A stretch of DNA of 64,000 nucleotides from Amphiscolops sp. MND2022 (lineage: Eukaryota): the NCBI GenBank assembly GCA_964187785.1, contig OZ076416.1, positions 38,874,001 to 38,938,000 on the forward strand, given 5' to 3'. Both the position numbers and the translations under genes were made by a program. Under the pieces are notes generated by a model. The model was given only the letters and a program-made list of their open reading frames with translations. It searched no databases and was not told where the DNA came from. Within the stretch, counting starts at the first letter, position 1. Every line of letters starts with the position of its first letter. This document shows, in pieces, positions 34,901 through 56,330 of this stretch.

Positions 34901-35689
34901 AGTTCTAGTCGATGCTTATATAGGCGGTAATTTTCACAAAGTGGGTTCGCTTATTATGATTGAAAAGCTAAATCTTAACATTTTCTTTTAAAATTTTGAA
35001 CTCGTTGTCAGAGACGAACATGCATTATTTTTTGCCATCGGTACCCCGCAATTTTTAGATTCCTGACTGTCATGGTGTGACAACTTTGCAGTTGTCTAAC
35101 CAAAGGCGAATTACACACGATAAACGTATCATCTGATGCAATCAGTTTTTTTTCCAAAAGTTGACCATTCGCTTTTAGAGAGTAATTATTTCATGCCTAC
35201 CGAGTTTTCCATAACCCATAGCGTTGGACTAACTTTTTCTGGCCTTCAAAATGAGTCGTGGAAAATTCCTGTGGTAAACTTCAGTTTGCTCCAATTTTTC
35301 GTAGCCCCATAGTTTGCATCCTTATAAAAGAATTGGGGACATTACGGAATCGAACAGCTGTGTAGACGTAATTCGATCGCAAGATCAATTTTACCAAGCA
35401 AAATTTCCTTGTTTGAAGAGAGTTTTCTCATCCTCATCTGTGTTGTTTCATCGCAGCCTGGAAAGTATTGTTATACTTGAAGACTTAAAGTAACAGGGAG
35501 AAGTAACATTTTTCCTTCAAGAAAACGAAAGATGGTAAAGTATAACGTCATTGTAGAAATTCTTGTTTGTAGATTCTGTTGATCACTGAATGTCATTAAT
35601 TCGCGAAACGTTTCTTTCTGAAATCCAGTATCATTATCCCACAGTGAAGCATTAACTTATCGTTGATGGTGATTTGACTACATAGATAC
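31911..35689. repeat. ~2,045-bp tandem duplication (copy 1 31911-33950; copy 2 33956-35689, resuming at 55431-55738 after the LTR insertion)
   Basis: gcttcgcctctgtgtagaatg at 31911 and 33956; both copies end ttttccgctgaaacg (33950, 55738). Roughly 15 small differences seen by eye, and a 5-nt filler gaaaa at the junction. Confidence 0.93.
32400..33950 (-). pseudogene. Heavily degraded LINE ORF2 3' half inside the duplicated unit
   Basis: Minus-strand remnants KLTNFRCS...DEYHLLLNC (~32680-32830) resemble the C-terminal cysteine region of L1/Tx1/RTE-X-like ORF2. Many stops. Confidence 0.4.
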
Positions 35690-37215
35690 TGTCGCGTTAT
35701 GACTAACGCTTTAACAAACATAAGTAGGTGCTAAAGTGCAGTCTATATTTGACTAACAAATACAGAAACAAACATGAACTAGAACTAACGTTTGTTTATG
35801 GGGAAGAGAGTTGTAGATAAAGATGGCGGCCATAAGGCGGCGGCCATAACGTGGTAATAATGATGATGAAGTACTGTGACGAGAAAGGAATTGCACAAGT
35901 GAAGAATTCTATATTATACCGCGTATATTTGAAATACGAAAACAGCTATGATTGGTGGCATGTAAACCATGCCTGCTACGCAGCACACGATAAGAAATGC
36001 TTGGCTGTATATATATGGCCAACGCAGGCGAGGAGATTCATTCACTTATCGAAACGGACAGAGCTTAAACTTAATAGCTCTCGTTTCTCTTCACTTCTCT
36101 TCCACTTCTCTCCCCTCACCCCTGCTCTTCTTTCTTACTTTACCCCCTTTCCTCTCCCTTTACTATTATCTTCCCCTTCAGACTTAGAAGGTCTATTTCT
36201 CGCCTTCACTTTCAATTCCGATTGCTATCTAACTCAACAAAACTTCTTGCTTAATAACTCAGATCCAATAATTCTCTTTTAATCATACCCTTGCATCTTA
36301 AAATATTTCTCCACTCATCCTTGATTTAACTTCAACTTCCAGAACCAATCTTCCCTTAAAAGAAATTTCTAACTTAGAAATTTCTCTTCAATTTCGTCTC
36401 CGGTTTGGTGAGTCTGACTATTTAGACCTTTCAGTAGAGATTTCACTCTCTCTGAGACTTTAACTTAGACTATTTTCCGCTGATTTAAACTCGGCGGTTT
36501 CCAAAACCTTAACTTAGACTATTTTCCGCTGATTTCAATTCTGCGGTTGACCAAACTTTAGCTTAGACTATTCTTATTAGAACTAAAATTCTATGAGGTT
36601 GAAGTTACATAAACTCACATAAGAAAAGAGATGATTGAAGTTTTAAAGTGTCATATTATGAAAAAGTCTTATTGCTATTCAACTTTCTACTGAATAGAGA
36701 CATCTAAATCAAAACTCTTCCGTTTACAATAGTACGGATTTGTAAATTTTGTTTGAGAAAAAGATTTCCGAAGAAAAAGGGAAATTCTTATTATTTGTAA
36801 ATAGTTTCATTTTCTTAAATGATAAATTGTAAAAGTTATATTACTTCTTCTTGTAAAGTGAAGTTGTAATCTTTATTAATCTGAGATTTGTAACAATTGA
36901 AAGAAATATTGCTATGTCCAGAAATTGTTCACTTTCAATATTCTCAACTCATTCGTAATTAAACATATTTATTCACCATACATTTTCAGTAAACGGGAAG
37001 CTCATTTACAAACACCGCCTTGCGCGACTCACGCAATTTCTTTTGTTCGCACGTACACGCAAGGCACCCCTTTATCAGTAAGTTGCTAATTTATTTGTTG
37101 GGACTTATACTTGTTAAATCAATAACAGAACCGTCGCGAGATAGTACCTTGTAAAATGCAAACAAGGACTTGACAGATTAAAACTAATAAACAAATTTCA
37201 CCCATGCGTGCGACA
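35690..37215 (+). repeat. 5' LTR (1,526 bp)
   Basis: Direct repeat of 53901-55426 with about seven substitutions seen by eye. TG...CA ends, YY1-like AAGATGGCGG at 35820, AATAAA at 37186. Confidence 0.97.
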
Positions 37216-38250: not shown

Positions 38251-39705
38251 ATGGCTGCGCAAAATTACTTGGCTTATCCAGACCTCGGCAGAGACCAATT
38301 CACAGGAACAGACCCAGATCAAGATCCTGAACAATTTATACAGCTAATTGAAAAGAAGTTCCGTTTCTCTCATGGTGATACCCCAGCAAACGGAGCAGCA
38401 CTTGACGACTACAACTTCAGGAGAAAATCCTACTTTGCTACACTACTAAGAGGACCAGCAGCGGAGTGGTTCGAGACAAGTATCACAGACGCTAACACCT
38501 GGCAAGAAATCAGAGAAAGGTTCATCACAAGATTCGCAGATGGCCGAAATAAATTCAGACACAGAATGGAAGCAGAACATGTCACCAGAAGAGATGGAGA
38601 AGAGATAAAGAATTTTCTACACAGAATCAAAATTGTTGTGGGGAAAGGCTGGCCAGATGATCTTGCCGGCGTCGCACAAAACGACAGAAACGCAGAAAGA
38701 GCAGCACAAGACCGACAAAGAAGACAAAGGTGCATCGACTACTCACTGAGAGGCCTAAGACCTCCAAAACTGAGAGAAAAGGCACACGAATATTTAATGG
38801 ATCACCCGAATGCAACCTGGGAACAATTCTCCCAAGCTGTAATAAACAAAGACCTCTCCTACACGGTAACTACCGCCCTAACTGGCGGAGAATCACATTC
38901 GGACCCACTCATACAAGAAATGCGAGACGACCTGAAGGGAATCAAACTACAAATCAAAGAACAGATGAATAACACAATCAACTCAGTAGAGAAAACTGTA
39001 GACCCTAATGCTACAGGTCGAAGAATGGCCACACGATTCTGTGGCTACTGCCGAACAAATGGGCACACACCTAACTGGTGCAGAAAGAAGATGAGAGATG
39101 AAGAAGTGAAGAAGGTTCAAAACGAAGCTAACCCAGAAAGAAGAATAACATTCACCAACGACTACAACAAAAGAACTGGACCTGAACATGGCTCTAGATT
39201 TCAACCAAGATTACCAGATTCAGAAATCAGAAAACTTATGGCTGTGGCACATCAACTAGCACTGGCTGGAGCTATGCAGTCAAATCCTGCCTGGAATCAA
39301 TACGATAGACCACAAAGAAAAAATTTCAACCCAGAACGCCGACCTACGAATACAAGACTCAATCCTGGTAACCGAAGATTTTCACAAGAAGGGAGAAGAC
39401 CCTTCCTAAACAATTCTAACAACTCCAGGAGTGTTTCCCCTGGACCCCAAAGAGCAAGATCTCCGTTCAACTTCAACAGAGACCAGTCTAGCTCCTTTAA
39501 TCGCAACATACAGCCTCTTCCACCAAGGAATAACTCAGTCTTTCACAGACCACTAAACAGAAACGAAAGACCAAACACCCCAACTCAAACTTACGATCAA
39601 AGGTTCCCTAAAACTAATGACATGGGAAGATCCAACACAGTACAGTTTCTCGAAACTGACTACTCGGTGAACTCTGTCTCCGATTTTCGCCCTTTAAACT
39701 ACTAA
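38251..39705 (+). CDS. gag: Gag (484 aa) with CCHC zinc knuckle
   Basis: Gypsy capsid-like N-terminus (FTGTDPDQDPEQFI...LRGPAAEWF), CGYCRTNGHTPNWC = C-X2-C-X4-H-X4-C, and an R/N/P-rich tail. Confidence 0.92.
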   Translation: MAAQNYLAYPDLGRDQFTGTDPDQDPEQFIQLIEKKFRFSHGDTPANGAALDDYNFRRKSYFATLLRGPAAEWFETSITDANTWQEIRERFITRFADGRNKFRHRMEAEHVTRRDGEEIKNFLHRIKIVVGKGWPDDLAGVAQNDRNAERAAQDRQRRQRCIDYSLRGLRPPKLREKAHEYLMDHPNATWEQFSQAVINKDLSYTVTTALTGGESHSDPLIQEMRDDLKGIKLQIKEQMNNTINSVEKTVDPNATGRRMATRFCGYCRTNGHTPNWCRKKMRDEEVKKVQNEANPERRITFTNDYNKRTGPEHGSRFQPRLPDSEIRKLMAVAHQLALAGAMQSNPAWNQYDRPQRKNFNPERRPTNTRLNPGNRRFSQEGRRPFLNNSNNSRSVSPGPQRARSPFNFNRDQSSSFNRNIQPLPPRNNSVFHRPLNRNERPNTPTQTYDQRFPKTNDMGRSNTVQFLETDYSVNSVSDFRPLNY

Positions 39706-39783: not shown

Positions 39784-42700
39784 CACAAAAAGATAGTGGC
39801 TTAGAAATCGAATTTCTACTAGACACTGGGGCAACATCTTCAATCATCACCTACAGGACCTTTAGAGAACTTTGCCAGTTTCAACAAGACCTAAAACTTA
39901 GTAGAAGCAATAACACAACACGGAACTACTCTGGGCAGATCATCCCTATGATGGGATACATCACCCTCAAACTCTACTACGATTCCGATGGACAACATAA
40001 CTTCCCATTAACAGTCTGGATAACAGAGATGAAAACCCAAAACCTCCTTGGAATGAATTTCTGCCAAGAACAAGTTAACAAAATACACTTTGATCTTCCT
40101 GGCATAGAACTCAAAAGACCTATAAATACTTTTTGCTATGGTAGCCTACAACTCAACAAATGTTACCCCTATCTATCACAAATTCTCTCAGTCCGAATTC
40201 CTCACTCAATGTATATCGAACCAAAGACGACAAGATGTTACAAATTCGCACCGGAAAACACTAATAACTCATTTCCTCCTGGATCTACGTTCCTACCGAA
40301 CAGGAAGGCAGTTTCTACTGGACTTAACTTCATTAATGTCCTCTGCACACGATTTGAGAAGACTTTACCAATCGTCATGGAAAACAACAAAAACCATACA
40401 ATCACTTTAGTAAAAGGAACTATCGGATACTCAATGCTTGACGTATTAGACCAAGAAATTCCGAAATACCAAATTAGAAACCCGACAGAACTCGCCTATG
40501 CTATCCTAAACGAAAACGAAGAATACAACGACTGTTTCCTATTACACTCTACCATCCCTTCACAAGATATGAACGATTGCCTCAGAATAGAAGGAGGAAA
40601 CTCGAAAACAATACTCAGCAGACCAGACCCTATCATCATCTTCGTCCCGGCCGACCTAAAACCAGCCAAAGGTTTCTCAAAAGGAATCCTAACGAAAATA
40701 CCTTCACTTAAGGATACATGCGCAAAACAGAAACCACAGAAAGGAGAAATCATACCCTACTGGGACGAAACTCTGAAACGATTTATATATGTTCTGATTA
40801 CGAAAGCAAAATCAAAAGACAAGATTGACCCACAATTGCTAGTTCAATCTCTCGAAACTCTAAAAGCACACGCCAAAATGAGCGGCATCAAGACTATATC
40901 CATGCTACGGGAAGCCTCAGAGCTAGAAGACTTCCAATGGCAAGACGTCACTCAACTCATTCAAGACGTATTTGCATACTCAGAAATACAACTCCGAATT
41001 TATACAAGAAACGAACTAGATGTCTATGCCATGACTACAAGAGGAGACCCCGAATACGTACTAGAAGATGAGATACAACAATTTTCCGAGCAATTTCATC
41101 TCAAACATAGAGAGCTGGAGACAGAGTTCACAAGCGACGCAAAGTCCTGTCAACCACCCTGCGATGAGCAATTTAAAATCTTCAGGCCAAAAGAAGACAA
41201 CGAACGACTGATCGAGTACTACCTTCAGTATCAAAATAAAGAAGCAGTGCGATACATTAAAGAATTCGACTTTCGCTACTCAGACCTCACAGACGAAGAA
41301 CTGGTTCTCCTAATAGACTTACTAATGGACGCAAGAGATGTATACTCCCAACACAAATTTGACGTAGGGAAAACCAGACAAAAATTTAACATTAAACTAG
41401 AACCTGGAGCAATTCTAAAGAGACAGAGACCCAGCAAAGTACCACTTCACCTACGAGAAAAGCTAGAGAAGCTACTCACACAACTCAAAGACGCTGATAT
41501 CATCAGAGAAATGGGCGACGATGAAGAAATGGGATCCTTATTTGTGAATCCTATTATACTACAACCAAAACATGACTATGTCAAGCTGATCATAGATGCG
41601 AGATATCTAAACTCGGTGACAGATCTAACAAATTATTCCTGGCCCTTAGAACCGATCCAAACCATAATGACACTAATAAATGGAAACATCTTCTCAGTAA
41701 GTGATCTCTCCTGTGCATTTCACCAAGTCCCATTAGACGAGCCCACGCAAAAACTCACCAGCTTCATCATTGGCGGAAAACAATACACCTTCACCAGGGG
41801 ATTCTATGGACTCAAGGGATTACCAAGCTTCTTTAGCAGAATGATGACTATCCACTTCGAACCCCTCATCAAAAGGAAACAGGCAATTACATACATCGAC
41901 GACACGTTGATGCAAGCCAAAAACAAACAAGAAATGTTCACGGTAATTCAAGAATACCATAACTTACTGCGGAAAGCCGGACTCAAGGCAGCACCAGATA
42001 AGACACTCTTCTTCTTAAGGAAAGTCAAGTTTTTGGGACACGTGATAGCAGCCGAAGGAATACAACCCGTAGCAAAACGAGTAAAAGACCTACACAATCT
42101 CAAATCACCAAAGACCAAAACCGAAGTGAAAAGCTTCTTAGGAGCTTTGGGCTTCTATAACTGCTACATCAAGAATCTTCACGTCGATAGTCGACCTTTT
42201 TACGAACTCACCAAGAAAGATACAAATTTTTGTTGGAACCAAGAACACGAAGACCTTTTCCAGGAAATAAAGAAAAGAATTACCGAAGACACAGTGCTCG
42301 CAATACCCTCGACAAAATACCCCTTTCACATACACGTCGACTCGTCAAACGTTGGGACAGGATGTATCCTCATCCAACAATTCCCAGAAGGGAAACGGAT
42401 CATTTCCTTCAACTCAAGAGTTTTCGCAAAGGAAGAACAAAAGATGTCCACACTACACAGAGAATTATGTGGCATAGTCTCAGCTCTTCAGACGTATGAA
42501 CACTACATCATCGGATCTCCCTTCCCCATCTACCTATACTGCGATCACAAGCCGATTCTTTATCTCTGGGGAAGAAAGGGACAAGTTTCACCCCGTTTTT
42601 TTCGGTACCAAGTAATTATATCTAAATTCCCGAATCTCAAGATAATTTGGACTCCAGGAAGCAACCTAGCCTTCCCTGATATACTCAGTCGAAACGTCTC

Positions 42701-45202
42701 CATCGAGGAACACAAGAAACATCAACTCAGTCACAAAGTCATCCCAACTGACATACACTTTTTCGACGAACATGGAACCCAAGTACACTACAAAATCAAA
42801 CACGAAGAAAATGAAGAGACATCCAAGAACGACTTTTACCCCATCTTGTACGAGAAGGGAAAAGAACGGAAAGTACTTCATCTCCAAAATGATGGGAATA
42901 ACTTCATAGTTAACTCTATCTACGAGGAACCTAACCTGCCGAAAGTAGAGTCAGCACAGAGTTGCCTCGACGCTGGAAGAGAACTTGGAAAATTCGAAGA
43001 ACTAAGAATCAGGTCTGGAACACGGGATAGCACATCGGATTTATCACAAAACACTTACAGCTCCATCAACAGTGATACGGATGACGAAGCCCTCACAGAC
43101 AATCAGAGTCATGAAATTAACGAGACCAACTACGAGCTCAACACAGAAGATCTCATCGCGCGTAACCCAGGTCTTCCCAAAAACGCAAAGGCAATAGAAC
43201 ACCTCGATCTACCTACAAATTCAACTGAAAAACAAAAGACACCAACACAGGAACTCGTCAGACAACTTGATAAACTATCCAAAGAAGTAGAACTAAACGT
43301 TACAACGATCTTACAAGAACAAATAAATGACCCGGTACTCAGCGTAGTCCGACAATGGGTAAGAACAGGAAACAAACCCGAACCAAAGTCACCAGAGTTA
43401 CAACACTCAAAAGGCCTCATGCGTTACTTTCAGGAATTCGACAGATTATCTATAGAAGGCCAAGGAAACCTCCTTTGTTATAACGAGCCAACTGATGACC
43501 CAACAGACGAGAATCTGAGAATCTGTCTACCCCTCTCTCTATTTTTAGCTTGCTTTCGTATGGGACATTACAACGACCTCGGCGGCCACATGGGAGCAGA
43601 AAAGACCTTCCTCAATGCTAAGAGATTTTACTACTGGCCAGGGATGCACAACTGGATCTGTGCCCTCACACAAGATTGTGTTAGCTGCCAATCTAACAAA
43701 TCCAAACAACGGAGAAACAACGAAGTCCCACTGGAAGACTGCGAAACCGAAACTCAAGTATTCAGAACCATCCACATTGATCACAAAGGACCACTCAATC
43801 CTCCCAGTCGTGGAAATTCACATTGCCTTCTGATCATCGACGCCTTCTCACGTTACCTGATGGCATACCCAGTCAGAGACACAGGAGCACAATCTACAAT
43901 CAACGCGATGGAAAAATGGATTATGCACTATGGCATCCCTCAATCTATCGTACATGATAGAGGAACAGCTTTCGTGAACACTGAATTCGTCAATTGGGCT
44001 AAAGAGTTTGGCATTACACTTCGACCAAGAACCGCACACTCACCCTGGACAAATGGCAAAGTGAAACTCAAAATCAACACATTGCAAGATACTGGAGAAA
44101 CTTCTTAAACGAATCAGGAAACAACTGGGCCCAACTAGCTGCCAAATTTGCATTCGCCCACAACACAAGCATCAACTACACAACTGGAAAGACCCCCTAC
44201 GAGATAGTGTTTTGCAACAAACCACAGATACCTATGAGTCTGAAGCTGGGACTCTACAGGAACAAAAACAAGAACTGCAAATCACAATTCTGTCAAGGAT
44301 TACCTCCTCATTGCCATAGCGAAAACCAAGTCAAAAACGAACTACTAAATGGACTATTACGACCACAACTATCACAAAGCTTATTGGAACGAGAAACAGC
44401 CTTCAAAAAGGTCTACTCATCCACATACGAAAAGTGCAGAAAACAAACAGCTCAATCACACGCCTACAGGAACAGATTTAAACTTGGAAACCACCTCAAC
44501 ATAGGACAAAAGGTTCTGCTAGAAAACCATAGAAAAGATCTCTCCAAAAGCGAAAAACTCCAACAACTGCGACTAGGACCCTTTACGGTTACCAAACGAA
44601 TTACAAATACAACCTACCAAATAATAGAAGATCAAAACCCCGAGAATCTCCGAACTGTACATAGGAATCATCTAATAGAATACTTTCCTAAAGAAGAAAC
44701 ACTCCCCCCTCTTATCGAAGAATACACTACTCCCCACCGTGGAGACACGGATTTTTATAACAATCTTGTCAAAGGAAGAATTGAACAACTTAATGTTTCA
44801 GAACCACAAAAACTCGGAGACCTCTGCATATTGCCAGTACGGAATCAACAAAACCAAATACTTGCCCGCAAAAGAACGCAAACCCCCCAGAGCACAGACT
44901 CTGGTATCATCTCTCCAGAAAATCAGTTGTTGTCAACTCCCAAGACCCCCGATCAGCCTTCTACATCACATCCTCAAAACGCAGCAACCCCTATCCTGAC
45001 ATTAACTCAACGTCAACCAACTCCAGCACCCCCAACTAACACCCCGGCATCTTCTACCAAGTCAACGACTCCCTTGCAAGAATTACGAAGAGCCGTTGCC
45101 CGCCAAATAGAGAGAAATCCGCGTTATCAGCGAGCACAACCCAATCAACCAGCGCTACAGTCCATACTTCGTGAAAGGACTAGAATTGGTTACAAAGAAT
45201 AG
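39693..45202 (+). CDS. pol: Pol polyprotein: protease, dUTPase-like remnant, macrodomain, RT, RNase H, integrase; 1-nt frameshift at ~44063
   Basis: LLDTGA (39822-39830); YIDD (41892-41903); RNase H HVDSS/RELCG/CDHKP; integrase HHCC (GGHMG...CVSC), IHIDH, HDRGTAF and NGKV(E). After the frameshift the reading continues ETQNQHIARYWRNFL...TPYEIVF...LGPF (GPY/F motif) to the stop at 45202. Confidence 0.93.
40600..41006 (+). other. TARG1/OARD1 (Poa1p-like) macrodomain embedded in Pol
   Basis: RFIYVLITK...SLETLKAH...ISM...QWQDVTQLIQDVF..SEIQLRIYT parallels human OARD1 RYIYYLITK...SLEAMKSH...LSM...QWENVSAMIEEVF..TDIKITVYT (recalled sequence). Confidence 0.8.
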
Positions 45203-45605: not shown

Positions 45606-47615
45606 CCGGATATTACCGCTTATTTGAAAAATATTATCTTTATTATTATTATTATAACGATTAGACCATATATGTACATAGAAAACGCAAAAAAAGTGTG
45701 TCATAGGAAGTCCGAACTCCAAAATACGGGTGTACATAGAGAGTTTCTCAACTTGGGAAGTTATATTCACACTGCAGCAAAAACAAATATAAACCATCAA
45801 ATAGTGTCCAAATACAAGGCTGCATGCACAGAGTTGGAAATTTCCGCCGGCTGGTTGATGAGATAACCAACCACCACTCAGGACGCTCTATGACATCATT
45901 CGTTCACGCTGGAAACGCGTTTGCGCTGCCGTTCAGCGTACCACTCATCGAATTGCGTAATCAGTCTTGTTTGTCTTCATTCCGAGACATTAAACGGGCA
46001 CTTTTCAGTTTTATTATTTTTTGATATCTTTTCTTCTACGGTTTTTATTTTCACATTTCTACTAACGTTCCAAAAATTCAACGATTGAAATTATTAGACA
46101 ATTTTTGGCCCTTAAGTTACAAAGAAGCCTCAGATCGAAAAACCAGCGTTTTAAGAGGAATTTAAAATGGACGTGGGTTCATAAAACATCCTTGTTGCCC
46201 CGGACACTCCACTGATTCGATTTACAAGCCCTGGACTTGCGACAAAGGCACTAATTGACAACATTTTGAAGTCAAACCCTTGTTCACTGCCAGTGTTGGA
46301 TTTACTCGACTCCCGAATTGACGCAAATTTATCGTCAAAACTTGTTAATAATATTACTGGAGAGCATGTAATACAAACTCCACCACCAAGCGAAACTTCT
46401 GAGCCAACTCCCGAAGCTGAACAAGCTGAAAAGAAACAAAAAAAAGTAATGAAACCAAAACAGTGTTTTATCAAACAGCGTCAGTTTTGACCCTACATGC
46501 CGAGTTTCTTTGTCAGCACATCAAGACGACCAAAATCGCAGACTGTGTTGTGAAGGGGATTCGGGTCGTATTGAATTACATCTTCGGTATTACGGGTATG
46601 CTATGTTATAGCATCAAATTGTTTCTTTCTATTCTGAATGTTAATCATACAGCGTCTTACATGTTCAGCAAAAACTAGAAATTACACGGTATTACGGTTT
46701 AGGCGAAGGAACCTCTCAAGACTGTCCAGACAGAGAGTCGATCGAGGAACAAGATGAGATTCACTTTGATTCCCTTTATGTCTTTTCTTGGCGAAACTCG
46801 GGACTTACTCGACAGTTAATCGTAGAGTGATAATTATTAGAGTCGCCTTGACGTAATATGTCCTTTCAAAGGGCGTTTGGCTTGACGCCATTTCATATTT
46901 TTCCAAGAGTCAGCTGCCGTTTTGGCACGCTAACCTTTTTCGCAATTAGTCAGTTCAGAAAAACATAACCGGACACTTCATCGGAAGTTTTTCAAAAAAT
47001 CAGGAAACATTTACATTCGCATTTGCTACATGACACACAACCAAAAATTGGTAGAATACGAGAAAAATATGCTTAAAAACCTAAAAACAGAACATTACTT
47101 GCATAATACGATGCCTAAACATTGTTTTGTTGATGTTAGTAAGCATCATTGGCTTACAAGTGCAAATATAAAAGAGTTATATTATTAAATACCCTTGCCA
47201 CGTAAGGACTGAAAATTAGTGCTCAAAACATTTTAAGCCAAAACTTGAAAATGACACTCCCATTTTGGGCTCAAAAGATATATTTCGTTGGGATTTCACC
47301 CAATGTAAACATTGGTATAAGTTTTAATACTCTATTTTAAACCGTTAAAAAGAAACAGAGTCAGGAAAAGAGCATTCGCAAAAAAATGGGGGCTTTTGTA
47401 TTCATTAATTGTCCTATAATATTAGTTTTTGAGTCATATATTGTCTGATAATCGAGAACCAAAATCATCTAGTCTAATAGAGAGTCTAATAGTTAAAAGG
47501 TTGAGACCGTCACCAGGCCATAAGTGTAGCATAAGAATTGAATAGAAACAGTGTAGAATGCTGTTAGAATTGCTGTCTAGTATGCGGAATGAAATGAACA
47601 ACGAATGAGAAGCTG

Positions 47616-47668
47616 TGACGTCAGAATTAGATTAGGTCACGTGACCTCCGATAATCCCCGCTGGGCGG
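47616..47668. promoter_or_regulatory. Internal promoter-like motif cluster
   Basis: CRE TGACGTCA (47616-47623), palindromic E-box GGTCACGTGACC (47635-47646) and GC box GGGCGG (47663-47668), in an AT-rich non-coding stretch. Confidence 0.45.
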
Positions 47669-48061
47669 ACATAAAGAATCTAATAATATCAAATAACAAG
47701 TAATAAATGTTTTCGGCCTTGAAAAGAATGTTAATCAAGACTTAGACCTTTGGAAAATATTGCAATTGTAATCTTATCACACCCAACTATGTTGGCATAT
47801 ATTTTTTGAGAAACGAAACTCTTGCTATTTTTAAACATTTGCGAGTTAATTTTTTCCGCTAGGACATAGAGAGTCTGGCATGTCACAGAGAGTCTGAATA
47901 ATATTAAAAATTTGTACATAGAGAGTCTAATAAAAGTTATTATTATTATTAGACTTTTTATCTATACAATTTGTGCAACCCCGAGAAGGAACTTACGAAA
48001 AGCAGCAAACACAAAAGCGTAGAAAAATAAAGTATTTCCTGGAGATGAGAGGCAATAATGC

Positions 48062-48703
48062 CTACTCAATCTCCAGGAAACCGCCCCTCTCGGCAAGCTT
48101 CCGCAGCTGAGCCGCCCGCTCTTGCATAGACCATACAGAATAGAGACGCATCCACTGTCCCCGCTCAAAACCAGTGAGTTGAGCATAGCCACGGATATAT
48201 GCTCGTAATTGGAAAATGACCATCTCCCCTATGGGTGACAGCAGAGTTCCCTCCCACCTGGCTCCCCAGTTTGCCCGGAGGAAACTAATCAAAGGGTTAG
48301 GAATGGGCGCTACAGGAACAGCGAATCCCGGTGTTCCCCGAAGAGAACTCGCTATATTCGCCCAATTTTCCAGCCTGTCTATATCTCTCATAGTAAAGAG
48401 ATTCAAGAAGTGTTGGAGGCTGGAGTCCTCCAAACTCCCCTGAGCCATGGTGACAGACCCAGCCTGCGGGGCTACAGTACCCACAAGCGACCCAGAAGAC
48501 GCAGGTGCAGCGCGGGCTCCAGATGATGAAGTAGTAGACGAGCCCCCACGAGCTCCAGCGGACGACGACTGCCCAGCCACGGAAGGCCTCACAGAAGACG
48601 AAGACGTCCCACTAGCCGACACTACACCAGTAGAGGAGGACCCCGCAGATGTAGTGGACGCGGAAGTTGAAGGGCCACCTCCTTGCTCCTCATCCGTTGT
48701 TGC
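48062..48703 (-). CDS. Antisense accessory ORF (Ser/Gly/Thr-rich N-terminus, ~120-aa Trp-containing domain); start uncertain (first ATG at 48448)
   Basis: 214 stop-free codons in a GC-richer block with sharp AT-rich borders. Globular-looking C-terminus LQHFLNLF...RANWGARWEG...GQWMRLYSVW. Confidence 0.55.
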   Translation of the reverse strand, partial: ATTDEEQGGGPSTSASTTSAGSSSTGVVSASGTSSSSVRPSVAGQSSSAGARGGSSTTSSSGARAAPASSGSLVGTVAPQAGSVTMAQGSLEDSSLQHFLNLFTMRDIDRLENWANIASSLRGTPGFAVPVAPIPNPLISFLRANWGARWEGTLLSPIGEMVIFQLRAYIRGYAQLTGFERGQWMRLYSVWSMQERAAQLRKLAERGGFLEIE

Positions 48704-48982: not shown

Positions 48983-49204
48983 ATGATCATAATATTCAAA
49001 ATCGACAACCGACTTTCCCAGATCACTGACATTCAGAAGGAACCCTCAACACAGAACATAATCATACAAGCCTATGCAATCGCAGAGGAAGTGAGTGAAA
49101 CCTACACGTGTGTGCCAGCATCACCTATCTACCCACTACTGGAGAGTCTACTATATAATAACACTACTACCGAAGTCTTCACAAGAGCCAAGTCAGTCCT
49201 TTAA
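48983..49204 (+). CDS. Small accessory ORF (73 aa; upstream part possibly degraded)
   Basis: Its TAA overlaps the next ATG (TAATG at 49202-49206). Confidence 0.45.
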   Translation: MIIIFKIDNRLSQITDIQKEPSTQNIIIQAYAIAEEVSETYTCVPASPIYPLLESLLYNNTTTEVFTRAKSVL

Positions 49205-49599
49205 TGTCCTCTCCCGCAGTTGCCGTATTTCGAGGAAATAAGTACTACTTCCACACTCAATTTCAACCTCCGGTTCCTTGGAAACCTATACAACTCACGG
49301 GTGAATACGAAATACAGTCAATCTTTTACGAGATCACTACCTCGGCGATACAAGTCCGTATACTCACACCAGAAGACAAAGAAGCACTAGTCCTCTTCCC
49401 TATTCACTTCGGGTCCAAGGAATACGCCTACCTATTCCTATCGTTCCAACAATACATACTCCAACACCCCGCTGTCCTTAAAGACAAGGCTTTCGACGGC
49501 TTGGTTTATTTTATGGATATCACCCTAGTAACTAACCCCTTTGAAGAAGAGGTTAGAATCAAATATCTTCACACCCTAGTTGAGACCTATGATGTTTAA
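49204..49599 (+). CDS. Small accessory ORF B (131 aa), unknown function
   Basis: ATG-initiated, protein-like composition, overlapping both neighbouring ORFs. Confidence 0.65.
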   Translation: MSSPAVAVFRGNKYYFHTQFQPPVPWKPIQLTGEYEIQSIFYEITTSAIQVRILTPEDKEALVLFPIHFGSKEYAYLFLSFQQYILQHPAVLKDKAFDGLVYFMDITLVTNPFEEEVRIKYLHTLVETYDV

Positions 49600-49933
49600 A
49601 ATACAACTCAAATTCCTCTGGCGTCACCCGGAAACAAACACACTTCTTGAGATCCTCTCTATAGCCTGGAAAGAGAGCGCCCTCGCACTTCAGATTGAAC
49701 TCCACAGCCTCCGACCACATCAAACGGGACATTGGCTCATCCCTGTCGCCACAGACTCGACAGAAGCAGCAGATCTTGCGAAGGCGCTAACCGAATACAG
49801 GCAGATCGCTTACTTAGATCACGTTCACCCTCTGACCCTTCATCTCCTCAGCAAGTTAATCGATTTTCTCGACGCTCAGGGACGTAACAAACACTCTCCC
49901 AGTCTAAAATCAATCAGTGATAACTACAGCTGA
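49589..49933 (+). CDS. Small accessory ORF C (114 aa), unknown function
   Basis: ATGATG overlaps the last 11 nt of ORF B; similar motif pattern to ORF A. Confidence 0.65.
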   Translation: MMFKIQLKFLWRHPETNTLLEILSIAWKESALALQIELHSLRPHQTGHWLIPVATDSTEAADLAKALTEYRQIAYLDHVHPLTLHLLSKLIDFLDAQGRNKHSPSLKSISDNYS

Positions 49934-50158: not shown

Positions 50159-52306
50159 ATGAAATTATTTTACTTACTCTTTTTATGCGCCCATTACGCG
50201 CCCGTTGTGATATTACAACGTCCAACGCCAAACCTCGCTAGCGTTGCTAAAAAACTGCGAGTAACTCATTTCGACTGCGGCGAAATGACCCAAAATAAAC
50301 TCTACGCATTGAATCAAGTTGAACAATGCAATGTGGCACCTGAAAACTTAGAGGTAAGTCGTGCGAGCGTAACGTTATACACTAAACATTTCCGCCGCAC
50401 TATCAACGCCACTATGTGCCGTGTGAAACATCAGAGTGAAGAATGGCATTGTGGTTATCACGACCACTCCAGTATGTCAATCCTACACGACAGAATCACC
50501 AGCGATCTTTCCCTGTCACCCGAAACCTGCAAGGCAATGGGTGAAGGCAAAGAAGTCATAATCCATGGACAACCCCTCAAATTTAAGAAAGGAGTGAAAC
50601 AAGTACAGACGAGAAACGCCAAATACGGAAAGAGTTGGGACGGTGTACGCGACCCAGATACCCGAAATGAATGCAAGACAGGTGGCTGGATCAAAAGAGA
50701 AACATTCGAATCTCACATCCAAGATGCTGAATTATCAGTAAAAACTCGAGATGGAAAAGTCCTGACTCCTTTTCAGATGGTCCTTCCCTGCCCCTTAGAA
50801 CAACTAGGTTGCGAAACGACGTCACTGGACCCATACGCCTACACATGGGCGGAGCCCGATAATTGCGTGCTTGCAGTACATAGGAAAGAAATCGTGAACA
50901 TGATCAAACACGGATCTAACTATTATATTGTAAGCGGCAACGACTCCACTACCAAATTTTTATTCGAAGTCTACAACAGACCACAAAAGTATTGCAACAA
51001 ACCAGACGATGTATACCCGACCAACTGCGAATCCCTGTACGTTTCAATCCAACTTGGTGGCTTCGACATGACGTCCGGCAGACGACTCGGCATCTCCATG
51101 GGAGAGACATCTAAACTACAATACTATTCACCCGAAGATGGTTCTGGTAATGGCCGACTCCACCTCTTTTGAGGCCCGAGCGACCCCAACCCTAATACAC
51201 CTCATTACCTCAACATGGATTACGAGTTACACCAAGGGACAAAGCTTGATTATCTCTTCTTTGAGAGCACTCGTCTCCTCGAAGCCTCAGAAATCCAACT
51301 CCTCAAAGCTCAATGTGAACAAGAACGAACTCAAATCCTCACTATCTTGATGTTATCAATGGAAAATCCTCGCCTCGCCGGATACATGCTCACGGGAAAT
51401 CGCTCTATGTTCCTGAACACAGATGGCAGCCTCGCTTGGCTCTACCACTGTCCGGAATCCCACTCACCTCTTCACACGATGAACCGATGCTACGACCGCA
51501 TACCCATCTTCTACAAAGGAGTGGTTGCCTTCGTGGACCCAATCACCCGACAGACCTATCCTAACGCGAACGCCCAAAATTGCAGCGATCGCATTAAGAA
51601 CCTCTTTCAATTGGATATGGAAGACAAAGACTCCTGGTTTACCCTCACTCCTTCACCCGAACATCGCGACCGACCTGCTATCTTCGGACCCAAAGACATA
51701 CAACCAATGATTACTAGATCCTTCCCTGGTTCACAAGACGCGGGAATGTACACGCCTAAACAACTCTCAGAATTTTGGGACAACATCCTCATCAGCGCAG
51801 CGTCTCGCAACGCCCTCCAGAAGTTCTCACGAGAGCTCATCACACCCTCAATGGCCCATAGTGGACCTGAATCATTCGCGTATTATGCACCCCGTACCGA
51901 TTTTTATGTTGACGGCATGATATCACCCGGTTACTTCAAAAATCAGTTCCTTGAAACATTCGGAAGTATATCTTACGTACTAGAACTTTGCGGCGCGTAT
52001 TTTGGCGCCTTTCTTTTCATTAAGTTCGTAATAGATATCACGGTACTCGTCTTCCGATACTTTGAACTTCGTCACCTTACAGGTAATACACTGAGCTTCA
52101 CTAAAACATTGCTCAGTGCTTCGTACAATCTTTTCTTTACCTCAGTTTTAACTTCTGTATTCACCCCGCGGGCCCCTTACGAGGATAGCGTTGAAGATAA
52201 AAACGCGAAAATTGAAGATAATGGAAAAGAAGTAGAACTCCAAGCACTGAAGAAAAAGGAAGAATCACTTTATCCCTCAGTACAGAGCTTCGTAGCTCCA
52301 ATATAA
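50159..52306 (+). CDS. env: Envelope-like glycoprotein resembling chuvirus/Monjiviricetes class III fusion proteins; one in-frame TGA at 51170-51172
   Basis: Signal peptide; cysteine pattern HFDC..LNQVEQC..ATMCRVK..WHCGYHDH..PETCKAM; N-glycosylation sequons NAT, NDS, NCS; C-terminal TM segment (~51975-52055). The two ORF-track segments are in the same frame, separated by one stop. Confidence 0.82.
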
Positions 52307-52352: not shown

Positions 52353-52934
52353 AATCTAGAACCACTATTCGACCTACCAAGCCTGGATGACGATACCCTG
52401 GATCCTATCCCAGAAAGTGACCTAGAAATCGAACCACTATCTCCTTCAGACTTTTTGACACCAGACTCGTCTACAACAATTACCTTTCTTCCAGACCCTC
52501 CTGACTCAACGGTCCCATCATCACCCTCAAAATCTCCAACTCCAACTTTCACACCTACGCCATCCGACCAACTCCCCTTTCCTTTGTCATTCACAGGAGA
52601 CATACCACCAATCCCGTCCGCACAACATCCTCCTAGATTTGGTGGAAAGGACATCAGAAGAAACACACCACAAAAACACTATTATGAATGGAACAACAAG
52701 ATAGCCGATGAAGCACCCTTACAGAAGCAACATAAAAGGGAATACTTCACTAGAAGAGCCAGATACGTTAAAAAACCTAGATTTAACGCGAACCTAAAGT
52801 ATTCTCTACTCCCACAGTTTTCAACCTGGAAAATCGTCTTTTGGGACAACAAAAGACAAGAATACACTATTGAGAACCCTGCACTGAAGGGACAGCGGCT
52901 GACAGTTCCCTTAAGATCCATATCTGCACAATGA
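52353..52934 (+). CDS. ATG-less ORF (193 codons; acidic and Pro/Ser/Thr-rich, then basic), probably a spliced exon
   Basis: The frame opens exactly after a polypyrimidine tract and TAG (tttacttttag, 52342-52352). No in-frame ATG; its TGA overlaps the next ATG (ATGA at 52931-52934). Confidence 0.55.
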   Translation, partial: NLEPLFDLPSLDDDTLDPIPESDLEIEPLSPSDFLTPDSSTTITFLPDPPDSTVPSSPSKSPTPTFTPTPSDQLPFPLSFTGDIPPIPSAQHPPRFGGKDIRRNTPQKHYYEWNNKIADEAPLQKQHKREYFTRRARYVKKPRFNANLKYSLLPQFSTWKIVFWDNKRQEYTIENPALKGQRLTVPLRSISAQ

Positions 52935-53863
52935 GCCAAAAATTAAACCCAAATGCCACCCCCTTCATCCCAAAACACAACCCCTACCTACCGAACCCTA
53001 ACCCCGACTGGCCACCCATGCCTGAAGAAAACGATCAAGAAGAACATGCAAACCTCGAAGGAGTGGAAAGACTAAATATGTGGATTAGTGAATGGGAGAA
53101 ATCAACTAGTACCTATAACCAGGGAACAAAAAGCACACCGCTTCGAAAGTCCTTCCCTTTAACGGACATTAATCAACCCCAAAAGAAGTTAGAAAACCGA
53201 ATCAAACTGCTATGTACCTCAATCGAAGAGGCACGAGATAAACGTCAACAATTGGAAGTCACTATCTTCGATTTGCTTGCGACAATCAAACACCAAAGCT
53301 CCCTCCTCAGCAGCCAGATTGAAGCGAACGGTAAAGATTTTATCACTTGGCAAGTTTCCGCCTTCTCCACACTTTACCGAAAAGCAAGGACCTCTCCAGA
53401 CGATCCGTTTCACAACATCAAAAACAGCTTCGCGAGCCCTATTTACCCAACATACCTATCAGGCTGCAAAATTTCCTTCAGAATATTCCCTTACGGGATA
53501 AACATCTTCCGTGGGACCCACTCTTCTATTAGCTGTGAACTTCATTATAGCGACTTCACTCACCCACAAACATGGCCCTTTGATAAAACAGTAGAAGTCG
53601 AAATCCTTGATCAGAAGGACGAAGGCAACAAGTGGTCCGCACTTTTCCCAATCAACCCCCACAACCACGAAGATACCCTTCACAATCTCTACACGCACCT
53701 GAACCTCCTCAAAGAAGACTTCATCCCTCATACGAAGTTACTTGTCAACTTCAGAGAAGCATTCCTAAACAATGACTCTATAATATTTAGAATCAAATTT
53801 AAAGAACCTTCCCCTAAGTCACTCGCGCTACATAACTCCCCCTCCTTTCAGTCTGACCCATAA
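52931..53863 (+). CDS. PAM2-motif + coiled-coil + TRAF-C/MATH domain protein (310 aa)
   Basis: N-terminal SQKLNPNATPFIP (PAM2-like) and heptads at ~53175-53325. TRAF-domain landmarks FITWQV, SFASP..SGCK, GTHSS, WPFDKTVEVEILDQ and NDSIIFRI at ~53330-53810. No RING or Zn fingers. Confidence 0.85.
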   Translation: MSQKLNPNATPFIPKHNPYLPNPNPDWPPMPEENDQEEHANLEGVERLNMWISEWEKSTSTYNQGTKSTPLRKSFPLTDINQPQKKLENRIKLLCTSIEEARDKRQQLEVTIFDLLATIKHQSSLLSSQIEANGKDFITWQVSAFSTLYRKARTSPDDPFHNIKNSFASPIYPTYLSGCKISFRIFPYGINIFRGTHSSISCELHYSDFTHPQTWPFDKTVEVEILDQKDEGNKWSALFPINPHNHEDTLHNLYTHLNLLKEDFIPHTKLLVNFREAFLNNDSIIFRIKFKEPSPKSLALHNSPSFQSDP

Positions 53864-53888: not shown

Positions 53889-53900
53889 AGGGGGGTGAGC
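53889..53900 (+). promoter_or_regulatory. Polypurine tract
   Basis: AGGGGGGTGAGC immediately before the 3' LTR. Confidence 0.75.
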
Positions 53901-55426
53901 TGTCGCGTTATGACTAACGCTTTAACAAACATAATTAGGTGCTAAAGTGCAGTCTATATTTAACTAACAAATACAGAAACAAACATGAACTAGAACTAAC
54001 GTTTGTTTATGGGGGAGAGAGTTGTAGATAAAGATGGCGGCCATAAGGCGGCGGCCATAACGTGGTAATAATGATGATGAAGTACTGTGACGAGAAAGGA
54101 ATTGCACAAGTGAAGAATTCTATATTATACCGCGTATATTTGAAATACGAAAACAGCTATGATTGGTGGCATGTAAACCATGCCTGCTACGCAGCACACG
54201 ATAAGAAATGCTTGGCTGTATATATATGGCCAACGCAGGCGAGGAGATTCATTCACTTATCGAAACGGACAGAGCTTAAACTTAATAGCTCTCGTTTCTC
54301 TTCACTTCTCTTCCACTTCTCTCCCCTCACCCCTGCTCTTCTATCTTACTTTACCCCCTTTCCTCTCCCTTTACTATTATCTTCCCCTTCAGACTTAGAA
54401 GGTCTATTTCTCGCCTTCACTTTCAATTCCGATTGCTATCTAACTCAACAAAACTTCTTGCTTAATAACTCAGATCCAATAATTCTCTTTTAATCATACC
54501 CTTGCATCTTAAAATATTTCTCCACTCATCCTTGATTTAACTTCAACTTCCAGAACCAATCTTCCCCTAAAAGAAATTTCTAACTTAGAAATTTCTCTTC
54601 AATTTCGTCTCCGGTTTGGTGAGTCTGACTATTTAGACCTTTCAGTAGAGATTTCACTCTCTCTGAGACTTTAACTTAGACTATTTTCCGCTGATTTAAA
54701 CTCGGCGGTTTCCAAAACCTTAACTTAGACTATTTTCCGCTGATTTCAATTCTGCGGTTGACCAAACTTTAGCTTAGACTATTCTTATTAGAACTAAAAT
54801 TCTATGAGGTTGAAGTTACATAAACTCACATAAGAAAAGAGATGATTGAAGTTTTAAAGTGTCATATTATGAAAAAGTCTTAATGCTATTCAACTTTCTA
54901 CTGAATAGAGACATCTAAATCAAAACTCTTCCGTTTAAAATAGTACGGATTTGTAAATTTTGTTTGAGAAAAAGATTTCCGAAGAAAAAGGGAAATTCTT
55001 ATTATTTGTAAATAGTTTCATTTTCTTAAATGATAAATTGTAAAAGTTATATTACTTCTTCTTGTAAAGTGAAGTTGTAATCTTTATTAATCTGAGATTT
55101 GTAACAATTGAAAGAAATATTGCTATGTCCAGAAATTGTTCACTTTCAATATTCTCAACTCATTCGTAATTAAACATATTTATTCACCATACATTTTCAG
55201 TAAACGGGAAGCTCATTTACAAACACCGCCTTGCGCGACTCACGCAATTTCTTTTGTTCGCACGTACACGCAAGGCACCCCTTTATCAGTAAGTTGCTAA
55301 TTTATTTGTTGGGACTTATACTTGTTAAATCAATAACAGAACCGTCGCGAGATAGTACCTTGTAAAATGCAAACAAGGACTTGACAGATTAAAACTAATA
55401 AACAAATTTCACCCATGCGTGCGACA
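53901..55426 (+). repeat. 3' LTR (1,526 bp)
   Basis: Same length and termini as the 5' LTR, followed by the ATAC TSD. Confidence 0.97.
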
Positions 55427-56330
55427 ATACAGATTTGAAGACAGTGTATTTTTCAATGATGGAAACAAATTAGGTCAAGTTGATAATCATCATTAGTGCC
55501 CAATCCTATTCTTGAAAGTTTTGTATCTATGTCAGGAATAAAGTAGTAGAATTTGATGGTGTTTCAGAAATTCTTTTGAGCGCCTTCACAGCTGAATTTT
55601 TTAACTTCAAATTGTCGTGGGCAACTTCTGTTTTTCTAAATCTATGTCAAAATATCAACATGTGAAAAAATCTGAAAAGGAAACCATAATATTGCATTAT
55701 CAAGATCCTAATTACCTATTTTCTTTTCCGCTGAAACGTAACACTGCAAGACTTACGTTTTTAGTCGGCGCTTTTAAAATAAAAGAGCCCGACTATTACA
55801 TTCGTTTTTTTGTTTTGCTTTAAGACAGTCTCGAATGCGACCAAATTTTCGTTCAACTAAACGAATACCCATGAAACGCATCTAAATTAGTGCAAAGCCT
55901 CCCACCTTTCATTTTTCACTTTTTAAACGTAACATACAAAACCAGACGAGACTGAAGGCCCCCTTCCAGTTTTTTTTGGCATTGCGACTTTTCGATTTTT
56001 TTTGTCTCCAAAGGGTCCCCTCGTAATGTCCGGAGTAAAGTGCTATATCCGAACTTATGACGTTATATCCGAACTATATTGCGTTTTATTAAGGACAAGC
56101 CTGAGGTTCGAAAACAGGAGTTTTTCACGAAAACGTCCTACGCATCTTTTGAAGACGGCGCTTTTGGAGCATTAGATTTAGCGCCGACTTGAGACGTTCC
56201 CGTCTTGTTAGATTGCGTGATATGACTTCTTTGATCATGCCCACTAATCACCGCTGAATTAGCAGCACAAGTGTAACAATGTTTTGAATGGGACTATCAA
56301 TGGGCCATCAATGTCTTTCTTCTAGATGTG

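Follow-up and report, generated by a model that had tools for sequence, protein, structure and literature searches.

Can an invertebrate retrovirus-like element carry a gene that faces the signalling machinery of its host? Retroelements outside vertebrates are usually seen as gag-pol(-env) machines, but a first-pass annotation of a 64,000-nucleotide stretch of DNA from Amphiscolops sp. MND2022 (assembly GCA_964187785.1, contig OZ076416.1, forward-strand positions 38,874,001 to 38,938,000; hereafter the window) described, just upstream of the polypurine tract of a retroelement, an ORF with a PAM2 motif, a coiled coil and a TRAF-C/MATH domain but no RING, and proposed that it is a captured host TRAF repurposed as an immune-signalling decoy with a handle for poly(A)-binding protein. 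To determine whether this ORF is a genuine gene of the element, and what it might do, we examined its coding capacity, predicted fold, conservation and genomic context. We confirmed what had been seen in the sequence; the interpretation placed on it was only partly supported.

A TRAF-like ORF in an env-carrying Ty3/gypsy-type element

We first sought to establish the boundaries of the element. This young element spans 19.7 kb, with LTRs of identical length that differ at 7 mismatches, a 4-bp target-site duplication, a primer-binding-site-like sequence and a polypurine tract, and it encodes gag followed by pol in the order RT, RNase H, integrase, and an env-like fusion glycoprotein downstream of pol (Table 1). 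Its gene order is gag, pol, an antisense ORF, orf131, orf114, env, ORFx and then the TRAF-like ORF, whose stop codon lies 25 nt before the purine tract that abuts the 3' LTR, so that its placement just upstream of the polypurine tract is correct. The host, as inferred from a flanking CPSF5-like ORF, is probably a convolutid acoel. Scans of the window for tRNAs and Rfam families found nothing, and no tRNA matching the primer-binding-site-like sequence was identified. Membership in the Troyka superfamily was rejected, because Troyka elements have CG..CG termini and a 3-bp target-site duplication (PMC12440569), whereas the termini here are TG..CA and the duplication is 4 bp.

Table 1. Features of the element and of the TRAF-like ORF, in window coordinates. 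L001 to L009 denote loci carrying copies of the element or related elements; P numbers denote protein relatives.
Position	Strand	Feature	Basis
35686..35689	.	Target-site duplication ATAC, left copy (right copy at 55427-55430)	Sequence read directly
35690..37215	+	5' LTR, 1526 bp, TGTCGC...GCGACA inverted termini	blastn against the 3' LTR, 99.5% identity
37219..37235	+	Primer-binding-site-like sequence starting with TGG, 3 nt after the 5' LTR	Sequence read directly
38251..39705	+	gag (484 aa)	Pfam Retrotrans_gag 25.8 bits, cut-off 24.1
39948..45202	+	pol (RT, RNase H, integrase with C-terminal SH3-like part), broken in this copy by one frameshift relative to the uninterrupted pol of L003	Pfam RVT_1, RT_RNaseH, Integrase_H2C2, rve, SH3_Tf2-1
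45656..47936	.	Block of about 2.3 kb with low GC (0.357) and no counterpart in the 98%-identical sister copy L002; probably a nested insertion or a variable region	blastn of the element against L002 and L001; composition
48062..48622	-	Antisense ORF between pol and orf131 (186 aa here, 211-233 aa in sister copies)	Called in L002, L003, L005 and L006; dN/dS 0.18-0.40; no Pfam hit
49204..49599	+	orf131, small conserved accessory ORF	Intact in 5 of 5 copies; dN/dS 0.02-0.07 among the closer lineages; no Pfam hit
49589..49933	+	orf114, small conserved accessory ORF overlapping the end of orf131	Intact in 4 of 4 copies; dN/dS 0.07-0.14; no Pfam hit
50159..52306	+	env-like fusion glycoprotein, broken in this copy by one in-frame stop; 714-716 aa and intact in L002, L003, L005 and L006	Pfam Monjiviricetes_fusion (PF24664) on the pieces searched apart, and 107.9 bits on the intact L003 env
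52353..52934	+	ORFx, 193 codons with no Met codon; its TGA stop overlaps the TRAF ATG (ATGA)	Open in 7 of 7 copies (192-227 codons); dN/dS 0.06-0.19; no Pfam hit
52931..53863	+	TRAF-like ORF (310 aa)	See text
52943..52972	+	PAM2-like motif LNPNATPFIP (aa 5-14)	See text
53033..53116	+	Predicted helix aa 35-62 with a conserved block (aa 42-56)	pLDDT about 87-91; invariant E, R, L, W, I, E columns
53144..53164	+	Short conserved motif RKSFPLT (aa 72-78)	Shared as ..FPL.. with distant relatives P0036, P0046, P0049 and P0051
53171..53320	+	Predicted coiled-coil stalk (TRAF-N-like), aa 81-130	See text
53339..53803	+	Predicted TRAF-C/MATH beta-sandwich, aa 137-291, including a divergent segment at aa 236-262 (53636-53716)	See text
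53889..53899	+	Polypurine tract AGGGGGGTGAG	Sequence read directly
53901..55426	+	3' LTR	blastn against the 5' LTR; sequence read directly

The TRAF-like ORF runs uninterrupted from ATG to stop, and residues 2-14 of its product read SQKLNPNATPFIP, as first described. Absence of a MATH fold had been named in advance as grounds for rejecting the annotation, but profile searches against Pfam returned MATH_2 at 36.8 bits (cut-off 32) and TRAF-mep_MATH at 35.0 bits (cut-off 27.4) over about aa 139-289. An initial AlphaFold model built on a 10-sequence alignment was too poor to use (pLDDT 51), while a model built on a 65-sequence alignment (pLDDT 77.5) predicted a helix at aa 81-130 (pLDDT 88-97) directly before a beta-sandwich. 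The helix has a heptad pattern, with 10 of 14 a/d positions hydrophobic as compared to 7 of 36 elsewhere, consistent with a coiled-coil stalk, and PDB alignments to TRAF1 and TRAF2 run into it. A Foldseek search of the PDB with this model placed TRAF domains in all of the top 44 positions (E from 8e-11, target TM-score 0.60-0.76), with TRAF4/5/2/3/1 ranking well ahead of TRAF6 and SPOP, and sequence and profile searches of the PDB returned TRAFs apart from two coiled-coil chimeras that match the stalk. By contrast, we found no RING and no TRAF-type zinc finger: neither domain was hit in Pfam, whereas the canonical hits P0053, P0095 and P0120 have zf-TRAF, and aa 1-136 contain only 1 Cys and 3 His. 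A RING is likewise absent from TRAF1.

Conservation of the ORF, its PAM2-like motif and the upstream ORFx

To test whether the ORF is more than a chance reading frame, we compared copies of the element. The ORF is intact in 7 of 7 copies examined, with dN/dS 0.11-0.30, although dS is saturated in many comparisons, and the MATH domain is its most constrained part (dN/dS 0.09-0.18). It occupies the same position after env in L001-L003, L005 and L006, and a homologous last ORF is found in L007 and L009, related elements of a second assembly; moreover, an internally deleted derivative (L004) still keeps it intact. Despite this purifying selection, it is the fastest-diverging gene of the element: for the pair L002-L003, amino acid identity is 58% for the TRAF-like protein as compared to 96% for env and 89% for pol, as expected for a protein that faces host factors. 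The possibility that the gene is a captured fragment without function, merely copied along with the element, would be compatible with the broken pol and env of this particular copy, but we consider it very unlikely given the selection on the ORF, its retention in the second group of elements and its persistence in the deletion derivative.

We next examined the N-terminus, which the model leaves without secondary structure (pLDDT 50-56). Its PAM2-like motif scores 16.1 bits against the Pfam PAM2 model (PF07145), below the cut-off of 20, and is likewise below the gathering score in every family member (best E 0.0027); nevertheless, 13 of 15 members hit PAM2 at E<=1, making it the Pfam family hit by most members. 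Within 15 aligned sequences L, N, P, A and P are invariant and F and P are conserved at >=90%. The motif is also at the N-terminus of P0016 and P0036, and its core and spacing persist across lineages of 57%, 35% and about 21% identity, next to a linker that tolerates a 39-residue indel. A motif pattern that we wrote ourselves matched, among the 174 proteins then fetched, only members of this family. A PDB search with the 40-aa N-terminus found nothing, and the motif is absent from P0029 and P0032, which keep the TRAF domain.

An unexpected feature emerged immediately upstream, where ORFx, a conserved coding frame, ends in a stop codon that overlaps the TRAF start codon as ATGA in all 7 copies and in L009. 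The ORF might not be a separate protein but be expressed only as a fusion with ORFx, through a -1 ribosomal frameshift or splicing, which would make the PAM2-like motif internal; ORFx has no Met codon and abuts the ORF, and the TRAF frame is open for 5-50 codons upstream of the ATG, but the overlap is only 5-7 codons in L006 and L009, we saw no slippery heptamer, and the Met and the motif right after it are conserved in all lineages, so that we judge a fusion improbable. An AUG-free leader between env and the TRAF ATG was rejected, as 2-6 ATGs occur there in other frames, which is not significantly few. Translation of the ORF may be coupled to ORFx by termination-reinitiation. No conserved RNA structure upstream of the ATGA supports reinitiation (z = -0.94; negligible covariation, -0.12 kcal/mol), and because ORFx has no AUG of its own, a splice would also be needed.

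Origin and possible role of the TRAF-like protein

The proposal that the gene was captured from the host as a full TRAF that then lost its RING is not shown by these data. The gene is old within this element lineage, and in a distance tree it falls in a clade of RING-less coiled-coil+MATH proteins (bootstrap 73) that also includes ORFs on a contig resembling a large DNA virus. Multi-MATH repeat proteins appeared to be the closest relatives by summed score but dropped out when relatives were ranked by best single domain. No annotated host TRAF was recovered as a close relative, and a final profile search for named host TRAF relatives returned only a distant rotifer protein.

Our analysis thus establishes a real accessory gene of a complex, env-carrying Ty3/gypsy-type endogenous retrovirus-like element, encoding a TRAF-domain adaptor without enzymatic parts that is held under purifying selection while diverging rapidly; everything concerning expression, oligomerization, binding and signalling is inferred from sequence and from a monomer prediction. 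In the explanation that we favor, with moderate confidence, the protein most likely forms a trimer through its stalk, as TRAFs do, and, lacking a RING and zinc fingers, would act as a non-signalling adaptor or decoy. Its TRAF domain or stalk would engage a host partner, either a peptide ligand or host TRAF oligomers, while its three N-terminal PAM2 motifs would dock on the MLLE domain of poly(A)-binding protein, linking or sequestering those partners to the benefit of the element; the likely benefits would be dampened host signalling or cell death, and favored polyadenylated element RNAs. In this view, its translation is probably coupled to ORFx through the stop-start overlap, or it comes from a spliced mRNA of its own. 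The dominant-negative role in NF-kB signalling put forward in the first-pass annotation is pure inference. The MATH core keeps 12 of 16 columns strongly conserved in other TRAF-like proteins, whereas the segment at aa 236-262, which aligns to the TRAF5 loop with three consecutive serines, taken here as the conserved receptor-peptide contact segment of TRAF1/2/3/5, keeps 0 of 3, in a loop that is modelled with low confidence and whose alignment is uncertain; as it stands, this weakens a simple receptor-tail decoy model.

These observations leave room for a more RNA-centered role, in which the protein is mainly a PABP-docking factor for the polyadenylated RNAs of the element, acting on translation, stability or routing to assembly, and its TRAF domain serves as a trimerization and cargo-binding module for the element's own proteins (Gag, ORFx) rather than for host immune signalling. 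The PAM2-like motif is the most deeply conserved N-terminal feature, the serine-loop segment is divergent in the uncertain alignment above, and the gene is tightly coupled to the conserved ORFx. However, the sub-threshold PAM2 score, its absence from P0029 and P0032, and the retained MATH core argue against this reading, and the fast divergence fits a host-facing protein better than a purely internal one; we regard it as possible but doubtful.

A bolder possibility, which we offer only tentatively, is that an LTR retroelement encodes an antagonist or re-router of innate-immune or cell-death signalling: a trimeric, RING-less TRAF decoy locked in an arms race with its host and tethered by PAM2 motifs to poly(A)-binding protein, in a retrovirus-like genome with at least eight genes, including an antisense gene and a stop-start-coupled gene pair. 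If so, accessory-gene complexity of the kind known from vertebrate complex retroviruses arose independently in an early-branching bilaterian. More generally, a conserved, fast-evolving TRAF-domain gene with a PABP-docking motif would show that an invertebrate retrovirus-like element carries host-interface accessory genes, and would add a retroelement case to the short list of virus-encoded TRAF homologues. The peptide motif, the TRAF domain and the ATGA gene pair provide concrete handles for studying how such elements deal with host signalling and mRNA metabolism in acoels, a lineage with almost no virology.

Comparison with known TRAF proteins, motifs and retroelements

By fold and sequence the protein is nearest to the TRAF domains of cellular TRAF4 and TRAF1/2/3/5, with which it shares a coiled-coil stalk followed by a predicted TRAF-C/MATH beta-sandwich. 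Its identity to solved TRAFs is only about 16-22%, it lacks the RING and zinc fingers, it adds a PAM2-like motif, its aa 236-262 segment is divergent, and it is encoded inside a retroelement. The motif resembles those of PAM2 proteins in having Leu, Ala, Phe and Pro at relative positions 0, +4, +7 and +9 in a disordered region, albeit below the curated cut-off; pairing of PAM2 with a TRAF domain is not known.

Virus-encoded TRAF homologues provide a precedent for a host-type TRAF domain in a virus-like genome. Megalocytivirus proteins of the ISKNV ORF111L type (OSGIV Q4KS49, SKIV A0A8F9RTS3) and giant-virus TRAF-like proteins were the best matches in the viral structure library (E 2e-9 to 2e-8), the closest being the megalocytivirus homologues, but these are genes of large dsDNA viruses, identity is only 15-18%, and no PAM2 is reported for them. 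No retroviral or retrotransposon example appeared in the library, and our literature searches found no earlier report of a TRAF or MATH gene in a retroelement. ORF111L binds TRADD and induces caspase-8-dependent apoptosis (PMC3352826), raising the possibility that the present protein is instead a signalling activator that engages a death-domain adaptor and triggers a response such as apoptosis that helps the element spread. We consider this unlikely: ORF111L has an N-terminal RING, which this protein lacks, the similarity is one of fold only, and a germline-inherited element would presumably gain little from killing its cell.

The ATGA overlap after a long upstream ORF recalls the termination-reinitiation cassettes of caliciviruses, influenza B and the SART1 retrotransposon (PMC10275272), without a detectable upstream structured element. 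The element itself shares with env-carrying Ty3/gypsy elements (errantivirus-like), and with LTR retrotransposons that captured extra ORFs, such as those with bdelloid rotifer ORF3s or the mosquito elements with chuvirus-like glycoproteins, the LTR-gag-pol-env layout, TG..CA ends, a 4-bp target-site duplication and an env taken from negative-strand RNA viruses, and capture of extra ORFs has precedent there (PMC13524379, PMC5408684, PMC7642597). None of those reports mentions a TRAF or MATH gene (0 occurrences), and acoels were not in the metazoan survey. The family described here, which appears to be undescribed, combines a Monjiviricetes-type env, an antisense ORF and a Met-free ORFx, and the element has at least five further conserved ORFs, including the antisense one.

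The TRAF-like ORF is the last gene of an LTR retroelement

To examine the first-pass annotation, which had described an ORF upstream of a polypurine tract encoding a RING-less TRAF protein with a PAM2 motif, we first analyzed the reading frame itself. It is an intact ATG-to-stop ORF of 310 aa, and its residues 2-14 read as first reported. Pfam places a MATH/TRAF-C domain at about aa 139-289 (MATH_2, 36.8 bits against a cut-off of 32; TRAF-mep_MATH, 35.0 against 27.4), while a PAM2 match at aa 2-14 scores 16.1 bits, below its cut-off of 20. Sequence searches of PDB with the protein, and with a profile of its family, returned TRAF5, TRAF4, TRAF2, TRAF1 and TRAF3, and several of these alignments run into the coiled-coil stalk; the only non-TRAF hits were two coiled-coil chimeras that match the stalk region. 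The observation that prompted this analysis is thus confirmed.

We next asked in what kind of element the ORF resides. It is flanked by two 1526-bp LTRs that differ at 7 positions (99.5% identity), with ends TGTCGC...GCGACA and an ATAC target-site duplication; a TGG-initiated PBS-like sequence lies 3 nt after the 5' LTR, and a purine tract lies between the stop codon of the ORF and the 3' LTR. Inside are gag, pol in the order RT, RNase H, integrase, and an env-like protein matching Pfam Monjiviricetes_fusion. These features make it a Ty3/gypsy-type element with an env, and exclude Troyka, which has CG..CG ends and 3-bp duplications (PMC12440569). Judged against intact sister copies, pol carries one frameshift and env one in-frame stop in this copy. 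An extra block of about 2.3 kb with low GC (0.357) is absent from the 98%-identical sister copy L002, and is probably a nested insertion or a variable region. Each LTR contains two overlapping copies of a 67-nt unit, 49 nt apart and 87% identical.

The element carries further conserved frames between pol and env. Two small overlapping sense ORFs of 131 and 114 aa (orf131 and orf114) are intact in all copies checked and under strong purifying selection (dN/dS 0.02-0.14), and an antisense ORF of 186-233 aa, conserved between pol and orf131 in all copies, evolves fast (dN/dS 0.18-0.40) and is a candidate antisense gene of the element. None of the three has a Pfam hit.

Elsewhere in the window, a flanking single-exon CPSF5/NUDT21-like ORF (Pfam NUDIX_2, 254 bits) is 88% identical to a protein of the acoel Convolutriloba macropyga, at most 76% identical to proteins of other named animals and about 75% identical to the human protein; the host is therefore probably a convolutid acoel. 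This ORF may be an intronless paralogue. The window also holds a second, unrelated reverse-transcriptase-bearing element, in which an ORF with RVT_1 is followed by ORFs of 258 and 358 aa with no Pfam hit; two ORFs of identical length (325 aa) that lie 2258 bp apart, have no Pfam hit and are probably a tandem duplication or repeat; a GC-rich stretch (0.46-0.49 against about 0.38 in the flanks) with several ORFs of 150-260 aa and no Pfam hit; and two runs of N.

Positions of the features described in the text, in the window and in other loci
Feature	Sequence	Position	Strand
Run of N	window	11223-11422	
Run of N	window	11813-11943	
GC-rich stretch	window	12001-18000	
Second reverse-transcriptase-bearing element	window	18455-21555	+
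ORF with RVT_1 in that element	window	18455-19237	
CPSF5/NUDT21-like ORF	window	25109-25765	+
325-aa ORF	window	26393-27370	+
325-aa ORF	window	28651-29628	+
5' LTR	window	35690-37215	
Overlapping 67-nt units in the 5' LTR	window	36457-36572	
Low-GC block	window	45656-47936	
Antisense ORF	window	48062-48622	-
Antisense ORF	L002	4793-5488	-
Antisense ORF	L003	4742-5443	-
Antisense ORF	L005	4814-5488	-
Antisense ORF	L006	4270-4905	-
orf131	window	49204-49599	+
orf114	window	49589-49933	+
ORFx	window	52353-52934	+
TRAF-like ORF	window	52931-53863	+
Purine tract	window	53889-53899	
3' LTR	window	53901-55426	
Overlapping 67-nt units in the 3' LTR	window	54668-54783	
Internally deleted derivative	L004	4699-12785	
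P0049 ORF	L012	10001-11119	
Contig with P0076	L013 (JGI contig Ga0224499_10000023)	1-17785	

Conservation and predicted structure

To determine whether the ORF is maintained, we compared it with its relatives. All close relatives of the element come from one unannotated ENA assembly, ERZ25074608. Relatives of the ORF at 97%, 56-57% and 35% identity exist, and each sits as the last ORF after env in an element of the same layout (loci L001, L002, L003, L005 and L006). Locus L004 is an internally deleted derivative (LTR, partial env, TRAF ORF, LTR; LTRs 97-98% identical) that still has an intact 311-aa TRAF ORF, and its LTRs hold several more copies of the 49-nt-spaced repeat. In a second assembly (ERZ26859043), more distant homologues are also part of related elements: the proteins P0032 and P0036 are each encoded by the last ORF after a Monjiviricetes-type env, P0055 lies beside degraded pol and env remnants, and P0040 lies between two 2.3-kb direct repeats.

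The ORF is intact in 7 of 7 copies compared, with Nei-Gojobori dN/dS of 0.11-0.30; the least saturated pairs give 0.23 and 0.30. It is also the fastest-diverging gene of the element: for the pair L002-L003, the TRAF ORF has 58% aa identity (dN 0.30, dS 2.0), as compared to 96% for env (dN 0.03, dS 0.75) and 89% for pol (dN 0.07, dS 1.34). The higher dS of the TRAF ORF suggests that recombination between lineages adds to its faster protein evolution. Synonymous divergence in this pair is 0.55 for orf131 and 2.0 for orf114, and these strong differences between genes of the same two elements point to a mosaic history through recombination between element lineages. Within the protein, the MATH domain is the most constrained part (dN/dS 0.09-0.18), while the N-terminus and stalk are less so (about 0.2-0.4).

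We then modeled the protein with AlphaFold using a 65-sequence alignment (pLDDT 77.5). The model has four parts: an unstructured N-terminus, a helix at aa 35-62, a long helix at aa 81-130 with pLDDT 88-97 that shows a heptad pattern, and a beta-sandwich at aa 137-291. In a Foldseek search of PDB, the top 44 matches are TRAF domains of TRAF4, 5, 2, 3 and 1 (E from 8e-11, target TM-scores 0.60-0.76), followed by TRAF6 and SPOP at E of about 1e-6 to 1e-5. The first 136 residues hold 1 Cys and 3 His, so no RING or TRAF zinc finger is hidden there. Against the other 55 TRAF-like proteins in the alignment, the protein keeps 12 of 16 strongly conserved columns in the MATH core, but none of the 2-3 conserved columns in aa 236-262, where model confidence also drops. 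This segment aligns, with some uncertainty in the loop, to the TRAF5 loop with three consecutive serines, a loop that contacts receptor peptides; the canonical binding site may therefore be remodelled.

The PAM2-like core, LNPxAxPFxP, lies at the extreme N-terminus. In 15 sequences that include the branch at 35% identity, L, N, P, A and P are invariant and F and P are at least 90% conserved, while the linker directly after the motif carries a 39-residue indel. P0036, an element-borne relative at about 21% identity in the second assembly, also begins with such a motif. PAM2 is the Pfam family hit by most members (13 of 15), but never above its cut-off, and P0029, another relative, and P0032 lack the motif. 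A second short motif, RKSFPLT at aa 72-78, is shared as ..FPL.. with P0036 and with the relatives P0046, P0049 and P0051.

Origin and possible mode of expression

To trace the origin of the protein, we built a neighbour-joining tree of the stalk plus MATH region (59 sequences, 204 columns, 100 bootstraps). All 25 RING-less short proteins form one clade with support 73, apart from the canonical TRAFs that carry zinc fingers, and the window's group plus the relative P0016 has support 100. The clade also contains proteins outside any retroelement. P0049, a 372-aa RING-less coiled-coil+MATH ORF in the second assembly, stands alone in its locus (L012), with no pol or env remnants and no LTR-type repeats within 10 kb, and is a candidate cellular or domesticated relative. 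P0076 lies on a gene-dense JGI contig (L013) with intron-free HSP70, a BIR+RING IAP, a kinase, a MAM-domain ORF and three RING-less MATH/TRAF-like ORFs including P0076 itself, but no pol, env or LTR; that gene content points to a large DNA virus, and the contig is probably one that carries relatives of the window's protein. No annotated proteome supplied a close relative. Capture is the only sensible origin, from an as yet unestablished cellular or viral donor that may or may not already have lacked a RING.

The region upstream of the ORF provided a lead on its expression. The 150 nt before the ATG are 82% identical across copies and belong to ORFx, a frame that is open in 7 of 7 copies, including the L001-L006 equivalents, for 192-227 codons, with dN/dS of 0.06-0.19, no Met codon in any copy and no Pfam hit. 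Its TGA overlaps the TRAF ATG (ATGA) in every copy and in L009, an element locus of the second assembly. ORFx must therefore be reached by splicing or by a non-AUG start. The TRAF ORF may be translated by termination-reinitiation, as described for AUGA and UAAUG overlaps in caliciviruses, influenza B and the SART1 retrotransposon (PMC10275272), although we found no supporting RNA structure and this remains inference.

Interpretation and comparison with known TRAF homologues

Together, these data indicate with high confidence that the ORF is a real, selected accessory gene encoding a RING-less TRAF-domain protein. Its place in the element, its TRAF-domain architecture, its intactness and its purifying selection are shown; PABP binding, a signalling role and coupled translation are inferred. 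Binding to PABP through the N-terminal motif is somewhat more likely than not, whereas a role as an immune-signalling or cell-death decoy is possible but less likely than not. The first-pass interpretation, a captured host TRAF repurposed as an immune-signalling decoy with a PABP-binding handle, is partly supported.

Finally, we compared the protein with known systems. Literature searches for a retroelement TRAF found nothing, and a recent metazoan survey of env-carrying Ty3/gypsy elements mentions neither TRAF or MATH genes nor acoels (PMC13524379), although extra ORFs captured by LTR elements are known (PMC5408684). A search of the viral structure library returned megalocytivirus and giant-virus TRAF homologues as the only strong matches, and no retroviral protein; the studied one, ISKNV ORF111L, has a RING, binds TRADD and induces apoptosis (PMC3352826). 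We classify the protein as a TRAF-domain protein (stalk plus TRAF-C) that fails the RING and zinc-finger features of canonical TRAFs. Virus-encoded TRAF homologues and accessory-gene capture by retroelements are both already known; here the two come together, in a TRAF-domain gene carried by a retroelement.
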